A stretch of DNA of 64,000 nucleotides from Thecamonas trahens ATCC 50062. Taxonomy: Eukaryota; Protista; Apusomonadida. The notes beneath the pieces were generated by a model. The model was given only the letters and a program-made list of their open reading frames with translations. It had not been told where the DNA came from and searched no databases. The first letter of the stretch is position 1. The number at the start of each line of letters is the position of its first letter. The stretch lies in the NCBI RefSeq assembly GCF_000142905.1, contig NW_013657678.1, positions 186,001 through 250,000 on the forward strand, read 5' to 3'. Position numbers and translations under genes: made by a program. Shown here one piece after another: positions 24,566 to 30,170 of the stretch.

Positions 24566-26513
24566 TTATGCCTGGCCGGCGTGCGCGCCGGCGACGCGGA
24601 AGCGGAACTCGAGCTTGCCAAAAGAGACGACGTCGTTGGAGGCGAGGGCGATCGGCTCGTCGGCGACAAGAACGCCGTTGACGCGGGTGCCACCCTTGGC
24701 GTAGTTGAGGAGAGTAAAGCCATCCTTGCTCTGGACAATGGCCGCGTGCTTGCGCGAGACCGACGACGAACCGTTGAGGAAGGAGAGGTCCAGGTCGGGC
24801 GCAGCGCTCGAGCCTGGGGCAGCCCGCCCCACCACGACCGAGTTTCCGGTGAGCGGGAGCGTAACCACGTCTGTGGCGAGGAACGCCACCGGCTCGTCAT
24901 ACTCGACAGCCGGCGCCCGCAGCGGGTGGCCGGCTGCCGCGCCTGCGGCCGCCGTCGCCAGCTCGACAGGCACCTCGCCGGCCTGGAGCAGCTCGGCCTG
25001 GACCTCGTGGACCCGAGCGGTCAGCTGGTTGAGCCGCTGCCAGGCCAGAAACTCGACAAACTCAGCCGAGAGAACCCGCTGCAGCGCGAGCGCCGAGACT
25101 GGCCGACCCTCGAGGGCGGCGCCCGCCGGCGGCGCCGGCTCGCCCATTGCCGCCCGGTACATAGCCATCTGTTCCTGCATCAGGCCCACCATCTTGGTCT
25201 GCAGCGAGTCGGTTTCCATGGCGACCGCTTCGCCGGCTGCGCTGGCCTGCGACGCCTCCACGGCCTCGGCCACCGAGGAGCGCATGCTCTCCAGAGCCGC
25301 TACCCACTCGTTCTGCTCGGCCACCGACGGCGTGGCGCCCGTCGCAAACGGCGTGATGCCCGGCACAGTCACCCGCGCCGTCCGCCCGCTCACGCGGCGC
25401 GGCGCCGCACTCGCCTCTTTGGCGCTGCTGAGGCCAAAGTCAAGCGTGACCGGCTCGTCGTCAACAAAGCCGTGCGCTCCGTCGTCGCTCCCGGCACTCG
25501 CCGCTGTCTTTTGCTTCTTGAGCACAAACTCGCGGACCCGAGCCGCGTACACATCAAGGTCATTGTGGTTCGGACAGACCCACGAGTCCGAGACCCGCGC
25601 TCCGCGCTCCAGGCCGACGCACTCGGGGTGGAACGACCGGCAGCAGAGGTCGCACGGCAGGAGCGGCCCGCCCGCCGCAGAGCACTTGCAGCACCACGAG
25701 ACGTTGAGCGCGTCGCTGTCGTCCGGCACAATCCCCGCAGCAGCGGCCCCGTTGGCGCCGGCCTCGGAACCCGCTCCCGCGCCTCCAGCGCTCTTCTTTC
25801 CGCTCCGCACCTCACTCCGCGGCGCGAGCGCCGACCGCTCGATGACCGAGAGCCCAGCCTTTTCCAGCTGATTCGCCGTCGCGTTGACCTGCCTGGCCGG
25901 CAGGTCGAGGACACTGCGAGCGGCGGCCGGAGCCAGCGGGCGGCCGGCCGCGCCGAGAACGCGGGTCACCTTGGTCCCGTACGAGAAGCCGCGCTTCCGC
26001 TTGCGCGACAGGATCGACGGTGGCAAGTGGAAGACCTGCGGGTTGTCGCGAGTCAGCGAGTCGATGAGCTTGCCAAAGAACTTGTTGGACATGGCCGCAA
26101 CTCCGTGCGGCGGCGCATGCTTGGTCGTGTAGCACGCGTTGCAGTACCACGAGCCGGCAGGCACCTTTTCGAGCGCAGGCTCCAAACAATCGAGATGGAA
26201 CGAGTTTGGGCACGAGTCGCAGCAGATGAGGTCGCCGCCAGCGCCGCAGGCACAGCACAGGTCGTAGTTGATGAGCGTCGGCGTCGACGTCGCCACCGTC
26301 GCCGCCGCCGGCAGAGCTCCGCTCACCCCGCCACCCACGTCGCCGCCGCTACCTGCCCCTGCCCCGGCTGCCTCGGGTTGGTCGCGGGAGGGCCGCGGAC
26401 GTGCCGGCCGTCATAAACGACTTGCGGGCTGCCGTCGCCGGTGCCGCCCCCGTGTCCATGGGCGTCGGCTCGGCGCCCTTGCTCCGCCGCGACGATGCCT
26501 TTGAGTCCGCCAT
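24566..26513 (-). CDS. PHD-PHD-FHA protein, PHF12-like (5' end has an unresolved frame break near 26350)
   Basis: PHD1 CCACGAGGDLICCDSCPNSFHLDC...WYCNAC, NPQVFHLP, PHD2 CDLCCRSFHPEC...WVCPNH, FHA GR...VSRKHA...GTRVNG. Confidence 0.82.
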
Positions 26514-27325
26514 GCCTCCTGCTCCCATCCGTCCCCACTCTGTCACGTGAGTCTTCGCCCGCCTGCCATCGCCGCCACATCGCGCCGTCCGCCTTCCCTT
26601 CCCCCCCCCCCCTCCCCTCGCTCCCTCCCACCGTCAAAAAAATGCCATCCCGTCCCGCTGCGCTCCTGGTCCCCGGACGCTGCAGGGCTCTGCGCCCGAG
26701 CCCGATGCCGCCGACCACGCCATGCACAACCACTGACTGTATCCCGATGGCCCTCGATGTCCTGCTCCCGCAGCGCATGCGCCCCTTATGCCGCCGCCTC
26801 CACCGTCCCGTCCCAGCGCCAGCGCCGCCCAACCTCGGCGAGTCTCCTCGGCCCATCGGCGACTCACCGGGCAGGGTGGCCAGCCATGGGGCGCAGCCGC
26901 CGGCTATGGCCCATCGCGCCAGGCCGCGCCTCCCATGCCCACACATCGCGCTCCTTGCGCCACTATCCCCGCCTCCTGCCTACCTTGTGCTGCGCGCCAA
27001 GTCGAGTGTGCTTGCCCCTCCTCTCCCACGCTACGCAAAGACGGCTTGTCGGCGACGGCTTATCGCTCGCAGCCCTCCGCGCCCTCCCCACCCGCCCCGC
27101 CACATCAGTCAGCCTCCTGCCGCTACAGCGCAAGCATCGCCACCCGTACATCCTCACCGACTCGCTCCCTCGAACCCTGCCGTACATCCCCTGCTGTTTG
27201 TGCTCTCGGATACGCCTGACGCCCTCCCGTCGTCCCACTAGCATGCCCGGCCTTGCTGCTACTGCTCTGGCGAACGCCCCCCAATTCCACCAACCGATGG
27301 CCATAGGCTGTCGCCACCCGCAGCC

Positions 27326-27406
27326 GCCGACCGACCGACTGGCCGACCGCCGACCGACCGACTGGCCGACCGCCGCCGACCGACCGACTGACCGACCGAC
27401 CGACCG
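27326..27406. repeat. (CCGA)n tetranucleotide repeat upstream of the histone-fusion gene
   Basis: ccgaccgaccga runs, followed by CAGCCAGGCAA repeats. Confidence 0.8.
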
Positions 27407-27549
27407 CCGGCCACCCAGCTAGCCAGGCAATCAGCCAGGCAACCAGCCAGGCAGCCAGCCTCTGGCCTACCTTGCCCGCACCGCACCGCACCCCCCACCA
27501 CACCCGACCACACCCGACCACACCCCACCCCGCGCCTCGACCTCTACCA

Positions 27550-28473
27550 ATGCTGTCAGCGTCAGCAAAAGGAAAGAACAATGAGCCGGACGGCGATGAC
27601 ATCCGCGTACGCCCCCCCCCCCCCCCATCCCTCACCTCTCCCCCCCTACTTCCTCAGGACGACGAATCAGTGTCGGATGATGAGAAACTGTCGCCGGAGG
27701 AGGCGGCCAAGTTGGAGATGTTCATGTCGCCCGTGCCTGGAGCGCCCGATGGCGTGCACCAGGCTAATGTCCTCCAAGACATGGCGAGCAACGCCCGTCT
27801 GGCGGCGTCGGTGGGCGTGGCGCAGATGGTGATCACGCCCACACTCTGGGGCCCCAACGTCTACAAGGTGCTCAAGCAGGTCCACCCTGACATGGGAATG
27901 TCGCGCAAAGCCATGGCTGTTGTATCGGACATCGTCAACGACTTCCTCCGCCGCATGTACCCGGTCATGGTCCAGCTGGCCAAGGCCTCGTTCCGCGCAC
28001 ACTTTGAGCCGGCAGACGCCGTCACCGCTGCCAGCCTCGTCCTGCAAGGCGAACTGGCCAAGCACGCCAAGTCCGAGGCCAATCACGCCCTGACCAAGGC
28101 CCAGGCTGCCCTGAGCCAGGACACCAACACCACAAAGCGGCTCGATACCGGCTCGTTTGACGGCCTCGTCTTTGCCAAGCGCACCATCAAGCGCTTCCTC
28201 CTCACATTAGCCATGTCTCCACCGCGCTTTGCTGATGGCACCGTTGTTTGCATCACTGCTGTCACCGAGTACATTGTTGCCGAGATCCTCGAGCTCAGCG
28301 GCAACGCCGCCCGCGACAACCGCCGCGCCCGCATCAATCCGCGCCACATCCAGCTCGCCATCCGCAACGATGAGGAGCTCGAGAGACTCTTCCGCAACTC
28401 GATCATCTCATCTGGCGGCGTTCTACCCAGTATCCACGCCGTTTTGCTGCCCAACAAGAGCGGCAAGCGCTGA
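27550..28473 (+). CDS. Histone H2B-H2A fusion (doublet) protein; in-frame 51-nt intron 27607-27657
   Basis: H2B fold [28 protein letters not shown]...[19 protein letters not shown], short linker, then H2A fold GLVF...[41 protein letters not shown]...[15 protein letters not shown]. Confidence 0.93.
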
Positions 28474-28538
28474 TTGTCTCACACCGCCGTCACCCATCAA
28501 ACACACACTCAACCCCCCCCCCCCCCTCTCCCCTCCTC

Positions 28539-30170
28539 ATGTGCGGCATCGCAGTCATCGCCGCCCCACGCGCCGGCGACGCCCACCCGTGCCTCCTCTC
28601 CCGAGTGGCCGCCCGCGGGCCAGACAGCACTACGTCGGCCGTCCTCGCCCCGGGCCTCGTCCTCACCGCCTCGGTCCTCTCGCTCCGTGCCCCGTTCACC
28701 GCCCAGCCGCTGCACGACGAGGACTCGGGCGTTGTCATGGCCTTCAACGGCGAGCTCTACGACGGCGCCTTGCTCTCCTACCGCGACTCTGAGGTGTGCG
28801 ACTCGGCGGCGCTCGCCGCTGCCGTCTTTGACGCCTTGTCCGTCGCAAACCCACCCACGCCCGCCGCCGCCGCCGCCGCCCTCCGCCATGCCCTCGCTGC
28901 TGCCGTCGATGTCGGCGAGTGGGCACTCGTCGTCTGGCTCCCGGCGCTCTCGACTCTCCTCTGGGCCCGCGATCGCTTTGGCCGCCGCTCGCTGCTCGAG
29001 GCGAGATCGGGTGACGGCGAGCTTGCCGCCGTCGCCTCGGTCGCCTGCCTCTGTGAGCCCGACCCGTCGTCTCCGGCTCTCGACTGGTCGCCCGTCTTCC
29101 CTGCTGGCGTCTACGGCGCGAGCTGGGATCCGGATGCTGGCCGTCTGAGCGAGCCAGTTCTGGCGGAGTTTCATCCCGTCCCCGGCCTCCCGGCTATGGA
29201 GCTTCTGGATCTCCTCCCGCCACCCGCCGCCGCCGCCGCCGAGCCAGATTGTGAGCCGGTTGTCGTTGCAGCGTCCGATCTGCTTCCTGCTGTCGAGAGC
29301 CTCGGCGCGCTGCTCACCGAAGCCGTCGCCCGCCGAGTCGTCAATGTCCGTGACGCGGCTTCGGTCGGTATTCTCTTCTCGGGTGGACTCGATTCTATGG
29401 TTGTCGCCGCCCTTGCCCACGCCGTTCTCCCGCCGCACACTGCCATCGAGCTCATCAACGTGGCCTTTGCCAAGGACGCCGCGCCCGAGGACGCGTTCAA
29501 CACGCCCGACAGGATGACTGGTACTGCTAGCGCCGCCCACCTTGTCGAGCACTACGCCCCCGATCGGACATGGATTTGGGTCCCCGTCAATGTCCGCGCC
29601 GCCGACCTCACCGCCGCCACCCCAGCCATTGCCGAGACTGTCGCGCCCGCCGCCACCGCCATGGACCTCTCCATCGGCGCAGCACTTTACTTTGCCTCGA
29701 GTCTGGAAAGGCGTGCAGACGCCACGGCGCCACTCGCCCCGGCACGTGTCCTCCTCACCGGCCTCGGCGCCGATGAGTTGCTTGGTGGCTACACTCGGCA
29801 TCGCGCTCGCTGGACCCGTGGCGGATGGTCGGCGCTCTCTGCAGAGCTCGCACTCGACTTTGCCCGGCTATGGCGCCGCAACCTTGGCCGCGACGACAGA
29901 GTTGTGGCCGCCCACGGCTGCGAGCTCCGTCTCCCGTTTCTTGACGAGGACGTTGTCGCCTTTCTCACCAGCCTCCCGCTGGCGTGGCGGACCGATCCGA
30001 GCCGCGAGCGCGGCGTCGGCGACAAGCACCTGCTCCGTGCCCTCGCGGCCCAGCTCGAGCTTGGCGCCGCCGCTGCCGCGCCCAAGCGTGCCATTCAGTT
30101 TGGCTCGCGCATCGCAAAGGTTCTGCCCAAGTGTGACGGTACGACAGCGCTCGGGGCGCTCGGCCTCTGA
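28539..30170 (+). CDS. ASNSD1: Asparagine synthetase domain-containing protein 1
   Basis: MCGI Ntn start, RGPD, FNGELY, RDRFGRRSLL, LFSGGLDS, GLGADELLGGY, RNLGRDDR, KRAIQFGSR. Confidence 0.92.
   Translation: MCGIAVIAAPRAGDAHPCLLSRVAARGPDSTTSAVLAPGLVLTASVLSLRAPFTAQPLHDEDSGVVMAFNGELYDGALLSYRDSEVCDSAALAAAVFDALSVANPPTPAAAAAALRHALAAAVDVGEWALVVWLPALSTLLWARDRFGRRSLLEARSGDGELAAVASVACLCEPDPSSPALDWSPVFPAGVYGASWDPDAGRLSEPVLAEFHPVPGLPAMELLDLLPPPAAAAAEPDCEPVVVAASDLLPAVESLGALLTEAVARRVVNVRDAASVGILFSGGLDSMVVAALAHAVLPPHTAIELINVAFAKDAAPEDAFNTPDRMTGTASAAHLVEHYAPDRTWIWVPVNVRAADLTAATPAIAETVAPAATAMDLSIGAALYFASSLERRADATAPLAPARVLLTGLGADELLGGYTRHRARWTRGGWSALSAELALDFARLWRRNLGRDDRVVAAHGCELRLPFLDEDVVAFLTSLPLAWRTDPSRERGVGDKHLLRALAAQLELGAAAAAPKRAIQFGSRIAKVLPKCDGTTALGALGL

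Follow-up and report, generated by a model that had tools for sequence, protein, structure and literature searches.

We analysed a 64,000-nucleotide stretch of the Thecamonas trahens ATCC 50062 genome (contig 2, positions 186001-250000, of a 28.7-Mb assembly), hereafter the window. Its plus strand carries, at 27550-28473, a two-exon chromosomal gene that encodes an H2B and an H2A histone joined in a single chain. The open reading frame (27472-28473, plus strand) is single and uninterrupted, with its earliest ATG at 27550, and the product begins with an acidic module, followed by the H2B fold, a linker of 19 residues, and the H2A fold with its docking domain (Table 1). A protein that is 100% identical to the gene product and has the same splice, P0001 (290 residues, T. 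trahens ATCC 50062), is named only "histone H2A" in GenBank; the gene is already public, but unrecognised as a doublet. The length of P0001 corresponds to exon 1 (27550-27606, 19 codons) and exon 2 (27658-28470, 271 codons), with the 51-nt intron omitted. We used this spliced product for folding and the translation of exon 2 for searches, and the domain borders are hidden Markov model (HMM) envelopes on the 290-residue product (H2B fold 86-168, linker 169-187, H2A fold with docking domain 188-290). A first-pass annotation, made from the letters of the window and their reading frames, had proposed a nuclear, intron-containing single-chain H2B-H2A gene at this place. It had suggested checking the gene by an HMM search for both folds, by RNA across the linker and intron, and by searches for orthologues and for an H4-H3 doublet. 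The two-exon frame and the Pfam and PDB matches over both folds bear the proposal out.

The Pfam search of the exon 2 translation matched two Histone stretches and Histone_H2A_C (1.3e-13 and 1.9e-12). Taken alone, the H2A half clears both Pfam cut-offs (Histone PF00125, 37.6 bits with a cut-off of 26.4; Histone_H2A_C PF16211, 49.1 bits with a cut-off of 20). The H2B half alone scores 19.2 bits, under the cut-off, and its fold is covered instead by the phmmer alignment to chimeras in the PDB. No further domain was found in the doublet product by Pfam. When all PDB chain sequences were searched with phmmer, the top matches were engineered single-chain H2B-H2A chimeras, with one alignment over both folds (6k00_D, 9.8e-46, query 67-267). 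The single-chain H2B-H2A arrangement is real and far beyond chance. The AlphaFold2 model, built on an alignment of 34 sequences, has a mean predicted local distance difference test score (pLDDT) of 82.5, with values mostly of 93-98 over both folds and 76-79 in the linker. In Foldseek comparisons the engineered scH2B-H2A chains matched with template modelling (TM) scores of 0.88-0.93 and 40-46% identity, and the Melbournevirus doublet (7n8n_B, TM 0.79, 25% identity) and the Sos histone domain (1q9c_B, 23%) were more distant. Among named viral models (BFVD), the best matches were those of Pithovirus LCPAC304 (36%), Marseillevirus LCMAC102 (31%), and the Marseillevirus H2B/H2A fusion (27%).

Seven sequencing runs contained parts of the stretch; six are filed as RNA libraries, and the majority are environmental metatranscriptomes. 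Four runs were aligned over 27300-28800. A 268-nt contig (run X2, contig 11) aligns to 27521-27605 and 27658-27839, with one substituted letter at the junction and the intron gone. This pattern corresponds to a synonymous C>T change at 27606 plus removal of the GT..AG intron 27607-27657, and the second difference in this contig (27570 A>G) is also synonymous by codon count. The intron proposed in the first-pass annotation is absent both from this RNA contig and from P0001. A contig of 367 nt from run X1 runs unbroken, with one mismatch, over 27972-28338, that is, across the H2B alpha-C helix, the linker, and the H2A fold, and two more runs from other studies gave pieces at 27797-27986 and 27846-28048 with zero or one mismatch. 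Since a spliced form can only derive from RNA, the doublet gene is transcribed and spliced in nature, and since an RNA contig crosses the linker, the fold-to-fold junction is not an assembly chimera. This RNA support consists of low-depth contigs, not reads, and its coverage ends before 28422. The single frame, the one annotated product, and the RNA contig over the junction do not fit a separate polypeptide that pairs with a separate H2B. Upstream of the doublet, a (CCGA)n-type microsatellite at 27330-27410 was covered at very high summed depth by metatranscriptome contigs that are unrelated to it; this coverage is an artefact of low complexity and does not reflect expression of the locus.

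We searched 1.84 billion cluster representatives exhaustively with HMMER and obtained 9,542 hits, among which only two clusters, P0002 (58-60% identity) and P0121 (42%), also match the N-terminal extension. P0002, the TARA orthologue, lies on a 5.1-kb TARA Oceans scaffold (L024), and P0121 is the Logan orthologue. At the P0121 locus the remaining docking domain sits in the downstream frame, which runs on into FG-type repeats and an acidic tail (L026 2039-2209); an intron is therefore implied there too. Repeats of the FG or GFG type were also seen at one end of many metagenomic H2B-H2A doublets (P0122, P0139, P0145, P0158, P0163, P0164, P0174). A link between histone repeats and nuclear-pore-type sequences recurs in these metagenomic doublets, in the Logan downstream frame, and in the C26 gene of T. 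trahens (Table 1).

The gene neighborhood is conserved on the TARA scaffold. There, an Asn_synthase gene comes after P0002 on the same strand, just as an ASNSD1-type gene follows the window doublet, and an orthologue of the PHD-PHD-FHA gene of the window (46.5% identity over 359 residues) lies upstream on the opposite strand. The top non-self match of the TARA ASNSD1 protein among 5.8 billion proteins is that of the window (45%, 7e-113), followed by a match at 40% (1.7e-72), which marks the TARA organism as a relative of T. trahens. Between the two organisms the doublets are 58-60% identical, compared with just 44-46% for both neighbors. In the window, the ASNSD1-type gene (28539-30170, plus strand; GATase and Asn_synthase domains, N-terminal MCGI) starts 65 nt past the doublet stop; in the TARA relative the gap is 184 nt and the adjacency is conserved. 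On the other side, a gene for 590 amino acids with two PHD fingers and a C-terminal FHA domain, as identified by eye (24566-26338, minus strand), stands head-to-head with the doublet at a distance of about 1.2 kb. Since the PHD-PHD-FHA gene is found at the same place on L024, the reader-histone pairing is conserved, and it may reflect shared regulation.

We calculated the ratio of nonsynonymous to synonymous substitution rates (dN/dS, NG86) between the doublet and its TARA orthologue. The ratio is 0.375 for the whole gene, 0.34 for the N-terminal module, 0.33 for the H2B fold, 0.35 for the H2A fold, and 0.99 for the linker, which retains 25% identity to the orthologue. The true values are probably lower because dS is near saturation. 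These ratios indicate that the doublet gene is under purifying selection. Of the refuting combination named in the first-pass annotation, no expression with a dN/dS near 1, such a ratio was obtained only in the linker, and the folds and the N-terminal module have about 0.35.

We searched the whole assembly in six frames with Pfam and obtained 23 histone-fold matches. The ordinary histone genes include divergent H2A/H2B pairs on contigs 9 and 14, one H2A.X-type gene, and one H2A.Z-type gene, and contigs 34, 57, 40, and 27 have strong further core-histone matches that are presumably of the H3 and H4 types. In addition, the genome has at least six fused-histone genes, namely the window doublet and five loci with H2B and H2A folds in series on one strand (Table 1). 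The doublet is thus no lone oddity but one of a family, a point on which the first-pass annotation was incomplete. No stand-alone H4-H3 doublet was seen among the 23 histone-fold matches of the genome. The window doublet shares ancestry with two of its paralogues, the C20b doublet and the Ran-GTPase-fused C26 triplet. The fold core of C20b has a net charge of -1.

Table 1. Parts of the H2B-H2A doublet gene, in window coordinates, and the five other fused-histone loci of the T. trahens genome
Feature	Position	Strand	Evidence
Exon 1: N-terminal extension, codons 1-19, with the start codon	27550..27606	+	First ATG; RNA contig from 27521; P0001 residues 1-19
Spliceosomal intron, 51 nt, GT..AG, in frame, C-rich	27607..27657	+	Absent from run X2 contig 11; omitted in the annotated 290-residue product
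Remaining acidic N-terminal module, in place of the basic H2B tail	27658..27855	+	Charge, conservation, dN/dS 0.34
Conserved N-terminal motif: acidic run, L-x-x-F-[MV]-x-P, DG-[VI]-[HY]; predicted helix	27691..27759	+	TARA alignment; C20b by eye; AlphaFold2
H2B histone fold with alpha-C helix; L2 and H4-facing alpha-2 end remodelled	27856..28104	+	HMM envelope 86-168; PDB phmmer; pLDDT 94-98
Linker, 19 residues, poorly conserved	28105..28161	+	25% identity to orthologue; dN/dS 0.99; pLDDT 76-79; spanned by RNA contig
H2A histone fold: acidic patch retained, L1 loop remodelled	28162..28383	+	HMM envelope from residue 188; Pfam Histone 3.1e-09
H2A docking domain and C-terminus (GGVLP.IH.VLLP.K)	28384..28470	+	Pfam Histone_H2A_C 4.9e-13; conserved in TARA, C20b, Logan downstream frame
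Stop codon TGA	28471..28473	+	Open reading frame
H2B, 156-residue linker with weak HMG-box match, H2A	C29:157962-158903		
Part of the 893-residue P0194: Ras/Ran-type GTPase, FG repeats, RanBP2 zinc finger, H2B-H2A-H3	C26:145760-146343		
H2B, H2A, and H3-like segments, two frames (C20a)	C20:387470-388368		
H2B-H2A, then more histone-fold-like segments	C3:581696-582166		
H2B-H2A doublet (C20b)	C20:411122-411256; L023 1402-2469	- (L023)	

The alignment of the three orthologues (T. trahens, TARA, and Logan) shows which surfaces of the histone pair are retained. In the H2B half these are the L1 loop, the alpha-C helix, and the lysine at the H2B-120 position. In the H2A half they are alpha-2, the acidic patch, the L2 basic cluster with the R77-position arginine, and the docking domain GGV[LI]P.I..VLLP, which is also present in the paralogue C20b. 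The acidic-patch positions E56, E61, E64, D90, E91, and E92 fall in EY..AEILEL and NDEEL in T. trahens, and TARA has one change (NDMEL). Several details of the first-pass annotation could be traced in the protein, including the acidic patch (E..AEILE, NDEEL), the H2B motif GELAKHA.SE, lysines corresponding to H2B K120 and H2A K119, a divergent L2 loop in H2B, and an N-terminus that is acidic (net charge -9 over residues 1-85). The minor-groove arginine of PPRF (H2A R42 position) is likewise present in T. trahens, but it is not a conserved feature, since both orthologues lack it.

Other surfaces are remodelled. The H2B L2 loop has F-x-P-x-D instead of T-I-T-S-R-E in all three orthologues, and at the H4-facing end of H2B alpha-2 the Y83-position aromatic and the E76-position acid are lost (positions numbered by us on the printed sequences). 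In H2A, the L1 loop and the alpha-2 motif PVY have given way to other sequences. All of these changed forms are conserved. For these comparisons, we take the H4- and DNA-facing residues of H2B to be the positions of human Y83, E76, R79, S87-S91, and R92. Relative to the canonical histones of T. trahens, the H2A half is 64% identical and the H2B half 49%.

The basic H2B tail is absent, and residues 1-85 have a pI (isoelectric point) of 4.2. The net charge of the fold core is +9, compared with +11 for the canonical pair and +9 to +10 for the orthologues. The module at the N-terminus has been conserved in both the TARA and the Logan orthologue, and the N-terminal region of C20b shows, by eye, the same motif (acidic, L-x-F-V-x-P...DG-I-Y) as the window gene. 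Because it recurs in this paralogue, the motif is an old, constrained element. AlphaFold2 places a helix at residues 32-42 within the module (block pLDDT about 90). A comparison of the module with the protein atlas gave no usable feature match, and the structural rows all had TM below 0.45 and were unrelated. Complex prediction for the N-terminal module (20-83) against the fold core (84-290), run without controls, gave a score of 0.00, which favors neither binding nor its absence.

Beyond the orthologues, well over 100 clusters at 50% identity from the exhaustive search match both folds in the H2B-then-H2A order; H2B-H2A doublets are therefore abundant in public data. Those whose context was examined sit on giant-virus-like contigs. 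The context of P0276/P0137 is a 514-kb scaffold (L025) with Rpb2, a D5-like DUF5906 protein, a faint Pox_A22 match, and two tandem doublets, which adjoin the D5-like gene (L025 9163-10876). The contigs of P0149, P0187, and P0170 carry a D5-like primase, mRNA triphosphatase, thymidine kinase, Evr1/Alr, a split Rpb2, and dense ORFans, and P0143 and P0257 likewise occur in a giant-virus-like context. A further giant-virus-like contig of 74 kb (L060) has singlet H2A, H2B, H3, and H4-like genes together with two doublets and an intein-bearing eIF2-gamma. A scan of IMG/VR with a single protein found no relative, and a scan with alignment A1 found 30 giant-virus loci.

In the maximum likelihood tree of 66 concatenated H2B and H2A cores (LG+C20+F+G4, unrooted), the window, TARA, and Logan doublets form a group (99/91), which is joined by C20b (97/92) and then by P0257 together with the pair of P0128 and the C26 triplet (94/86). 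This apusomonad clade lies inside a 12-row clade (95/88) that also includes P0170, P0149+P0187, and P0182+P0212, and the canonical histones, T. trahens's own included, are placed outside it. The approximately unbiased (AU) test did not reject a topology in which the apusomonad fused clade groups with the T. trahens canonical H2B and H2A (delta lnL 12.7, p = 0.305). In fold-core identity, the closest sequence after the orthologue is the host canonical pair (57%; H2A half 64%), and the best viral-collection locus reaches 49%. The likeness to giant-virus doublets noticed in the first-pass annotation holds for domain order, linker length, and best-tree grouping. Of its two proposed origins, a domesticated viral doublet or an independent fusion, the best tree sides with viral-context doublets and the AU test leaves host sisterhood standing. 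In this tree the doublet appears to be kin to giant-virus doublets, and the transfer may have gone in either direction.

As the first of these origins, which we consider only just short of an even chance, an H2B-H2A doublet of Nucleocytoviricota would have been acquired by the ancestor of T. trahens and the TARA and Logan organisms and domesticated; as part of the same proposal, it would later have gained the intron and host codon usage and been duplicated into the C2, C20b, and C26 genes. The position of the apusomonad clade (94/86) within the 95/88 clade, beside P0149, P0187, and P0170 from giant-virus-like contigs, argues for this origin, as do the derived motifs held in common ([VI]AL for PVY in H2A alpha-2, and EL..F). 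Viral-context sequences are also the partners of other T. trahens repeats (P0143 of C20a, P0257 of C26), and histone repeats are common in these viruses and were reported to be unobserved in eukaryotes (PMC11222145). However, the AU test leaves sisterhood with the host canonical H2B and H2A unrejected, the top identities outside the orthologue are those to host histones and exceed the 49% of the viral-collection loci, and no viral hallmark genes were found in the genome; the tree being unrooted, acquisition by viruses from a host fits it equally well.

The second origin, which we regard as a serious possibility at somewhat below even odds, is a fusion of the lineage's own H2B and H2A in apusomonads, with giant viruses of such hosts capturing doublets and triplets later. 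It is compatible with the AU test, and the host-like identity, codon usage, intron, and deep synteny all fit. The C29 doublet with its HMG-like linker groups with the canonical histones, so fusion does occur in this genome. On the other hand, the best tree parts the apusomonad clade from canonical histones at 95/88, and the canonical H2A and H2B genes are divergently transcribed pairs, which makes a simple read-through fusion impossible. A metagenomic doublet with near-canonical halves, P0168 (189 residues, on a 914-bp JGI contig), groups with the canonical H2B and H2A of T. trahens (99/91); it may have arisen by recent fusion in a relative, or its gene model may be partial.

The doublet gene has long resided in the host lineage. 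Across the window the GC content stays at about 65%, and the doublet gene does not stand out as a compositional island; the third-position value (GC3) is 0.80 for the doublet, 0.77 for the neighboring gene, and 0.85 for canonical H2A. No Capsid_NCLDV and no D5-type (DUF5906) matches were found in the T. trahens genome. Recent viral insertion is ruled out by this uniform GC content together with the lack of capsid or D5 matches. Recent gene conversion as an explanation for all of the H2A similarity is ruled out by the nucleotide identity to canonical H2A, which is 79% over 209 nt. There is, in addition, a gene-conversion-like tract at 28270-28380 of the window (versus L007 1625-1830), where 102 nt (AEILEL..RNDEEL) are 92% identical to canonical H2A, with third positions at 82%; for comparison, the docking tract has 78% overall and 47% at third positions. 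The tract ends, by eye, in about 40 identical letters. The residues RRARIN are common to the T. trahens canonical H2A, the window doublet, and the C26 triplet, and absent from their orthologues. This tract may account for part of the similarity between the doublet and canonical H2A. Rfam, at gathering thresholds, gave no match to the histone 3' stem-loop family in the window and nine histone loci, canonical genes and doublet alike, the sole match there being one tRNA.

On the gene structure, splicing, conservation, predicted fold, and family membership described above, we build a functional proposal, in which nucleosome incorporation and every functional consequence are inferred. With moderate confidence, we favor a doublet that serves as the pre-assembled H2A-H2B unit of a variant nucleosome. 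The two folds would pair within one chain, joined by the freely evolving 19-residue linker, and would form a ready-made H2A-H2B "dimer" with a fixed 1:1 stoichiometry, as follows from the predicted fold. This unit would dock on H3-H4 and fill the H2A-H2B position in a subset of nucleosome-like particles, a step suggested by the conserved docking domain and by sister genes that run on into an H3 fold. The protein has kept the docking domain of H2A, its acidic patch, and the DNA-binding site formed by H2A-L2 and H2B-L1, and its core is still basic. Remodelling, in forms that are conserved among the orthologues, affects the DNA contact of H2B-L2/H2A-L1, the end of H2B alpha-2 and alpha-3 that faces H4, and the H2A L1 loop. 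These changes would be expected to loosen the wrapping of DNA and to favor particles that contain two doublets. Before assembly, the DNA-binding face may be masked by the acidic head. Linkers of viral histone repeats were reported to promote chaperone-free nucleosome assembly (Irwin & Richards 2024, PMC11222145).

The following observations weigh against this proposal. The H4- and DNA-contact residues of canonical H2B are replaced, partly by acidic residues (own numbering), and such replacements could equally mean that nucleosome function has been lost. The pI of the whole protein is about 7.9, which is unusual for a core histone. Finally, the evidence for expression comes from low-depth contigs of environmental metatranscriptomes.

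A different function for the same protein would be that of a soluble, non-nucleosomal H2A-H2B mimic, whose acidic head masks the DNA-binding face and which acts as a decoy or adaptor for chaperones, importins, or acidic-patch binders; in one variant, it is a host protein that poisons the nucleosome assembly of giant viruses. The acidic N-terminal module (-9) nearly offsets the charge of the core, giving the pI of 7.9, and the H2B-L2/H2A-L1 DNA contact and the H4-facing residues are lost with the acidic patch kept, all of which would suit a mimic. Its best-tree relatives lie on giant-virus-like contigs, and other eukaryotic proteins with double histone folds (Sos, ABTB2) are not nucleosomal (PMC13088155). 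We nevertheless consider this function unlikely, though by no means negligible. In a free dimer the docking domain is disordered and serves no function, yet few parts are as well conserved in the orthologues and C20b; the fold core is at about +9 in all three orthologues, and the sister paralogues lead directly into an H3 fold, fitting assembly with H3. The decoy or chaperone idea of the first-pass annotation thus gained no direct support, and the conserved docking domain and basic core (+9) point to assembly with H3-H4 and DNA.

A broader and more speculative proposal, which we hold to be rather improbable, is that apusomonads keep a working chromosomal toolkit of histone repeats (doublets, triplets, and a longer repeat), a cellular counterpart of the giant-virus repeats as their source or by capture. 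The window doublet would be its self-shielded member, with the acidic head as a built-in chaperone, and would serve a specialised, loosely wrapped nucleosome or interfere with viral nucleosome assembly. If so, the ratchet proposed for the time before the last eukaryotic common ancestor would not be absolute, and histone repeats would be open to study in a culturable eukaryote. An artefactual origin (a chimeric assembly, a gene model joined in error, or a pseudogene in decay) is effectively refuted: many animal database "histone fusions" are indeed canonical H2A and H2B joined in gene models (P0003, P0004), but here the same architecture occurs in two independent assemblies of other organisms, the frame is uninterrupted, one RNA contig crosses the linker and another is spliced, dN/dS lies near 0.35, and the N-terminal module has been conserved.

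Histone doublets are well established in Marseilleviridae and other Nucleocytoviricota, and the joined H2B-H2A form is known chiefly from the giant viruses. Current ideas on the origin of giant-virus histones and the rise of the nucleosome turn on histone repeats. Such repeats were stated to be unobserved in eukaryotes, in a data set that included the T. trahens proteome, and a ratchet acting before the last eukaryotic common ancestor was inferred to have locked histones into separate chains (Irwin & Richards 2024, PMC11222145). The T. trahens doublet has the marks of a genuine eukaryotic fusion, namely an intron with a spliced RNA form, purifying selection, synteny across species, and paralogues in the same genome. 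It offers a cellular lineage for rooted histone phylogenies, a culturable organism for direct tests of histone-repeat function, and a natural H2A-H2B unit in which the basic tail is swapped for a conserved acidic module. We found no description of Thecamonas fused histones in full-text literature searches, and neither PMC13088155 nor PMC13520046 names Thecamonas or a nucleosomal-type doublet from a protist.

Double histone folds described in eukaryotes comprise Sos, ABTB2, SPT3, and the HSIH-DHF proteins of animal databases (PMC13088155, PMC13520046). The HSIH-DHF proteins have so far been reported from animals only, and each of their folds shares 60% or more of its residues with a nucleosomal histone (Miyake et al. 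2026, as reviewed in PMC13088155). Like the T. trahens doublet, these proteins and the fish H2A-H2B gene models have two nucleosomal-type folds in one eukaryotic chain. The animal-type models P0003 and P0004, however, have canonical sequences in the H2A-then-H2B order or in multiples, whereas the T. trahens doublet is diverged; compared with host histones, its H2A half lies above the 60% level (64%) and its H2B half below it (49%). Unlike the HSIH-DHF models, it has conserved derived surfaces, an N-terminal module, syntenic orthologues, and RNA evidence. The histone domain of Sos and that of ABTB2/Cca3 also have an H2B-like and then an H2A-like fold in one eukaryotic chain, but Sos is only about 23% identical to the doublet (1q9c_B) and ranks far below the nucleosomal matches in Foldseek. 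Folds of the Sos/ABTB2 type sit in signalling proteins, with no evidence that they replace canonical histones in nucleosomes (PMC13088155). Assignment to an already described eukaryotic doublet family, which the first-pass annotation had named as removing the novelty, is not what these comparisons give for either HSIH-DHF or Sos/ABTB2.

The best matches in sequence and structure are the engineered single-chain H2B-H2A proteins (6w4l, 6k00, 4m6b; 1e-45, TM 0.88-0.93), which have the same order and a similar junction. As artificial constructs, they are of use here only for structural comparison, and they show that a chain of this kind adopts the fold of an H2A-H2B dimer. Among natural systems, the doublets of Nucleocytoviricota (Marseillevirus/Melbournevirus H-beta-H-alpha, Pithovirus, and metagenomic sequences) have the same H2B-then-H2A order, a short linker (11-31 residues in most of the 30-odd viral-collection loci measured, compared with 19 in T. 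trahens), and the same predicted fold (7n8n_B, TM 0.79; BFVD matches). In contrast to them, the T. trahens doublet is encoded by a host chromosomal gene that has a spliceosomal intron, follows host codon usage, and lies in conserved host synteny. It is also nearer to eukaryotic histones, with 40-46% identity to the scH2B-H2A chimeras versus 25-27% to the Marseillevirus/Melbournevirus doublets, and it has a conserved acidic N-terminal module where the viral doublets examined have basic tails. Irwin & Richards 2024 (PMC11222145) catalogued triplets and quadruplets of viral histones, whose domain orders are also those of the sister paralogues of T. trahens (H2B-H2A-H3 triplets and the longer repeat). 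The T. trahens repeats differ from the viral triplets in being chromosomal in a free-living flagellate, where one of them is fused to a Ran-type GTPase, FG repeats, and a RanBP2 zinc finger.

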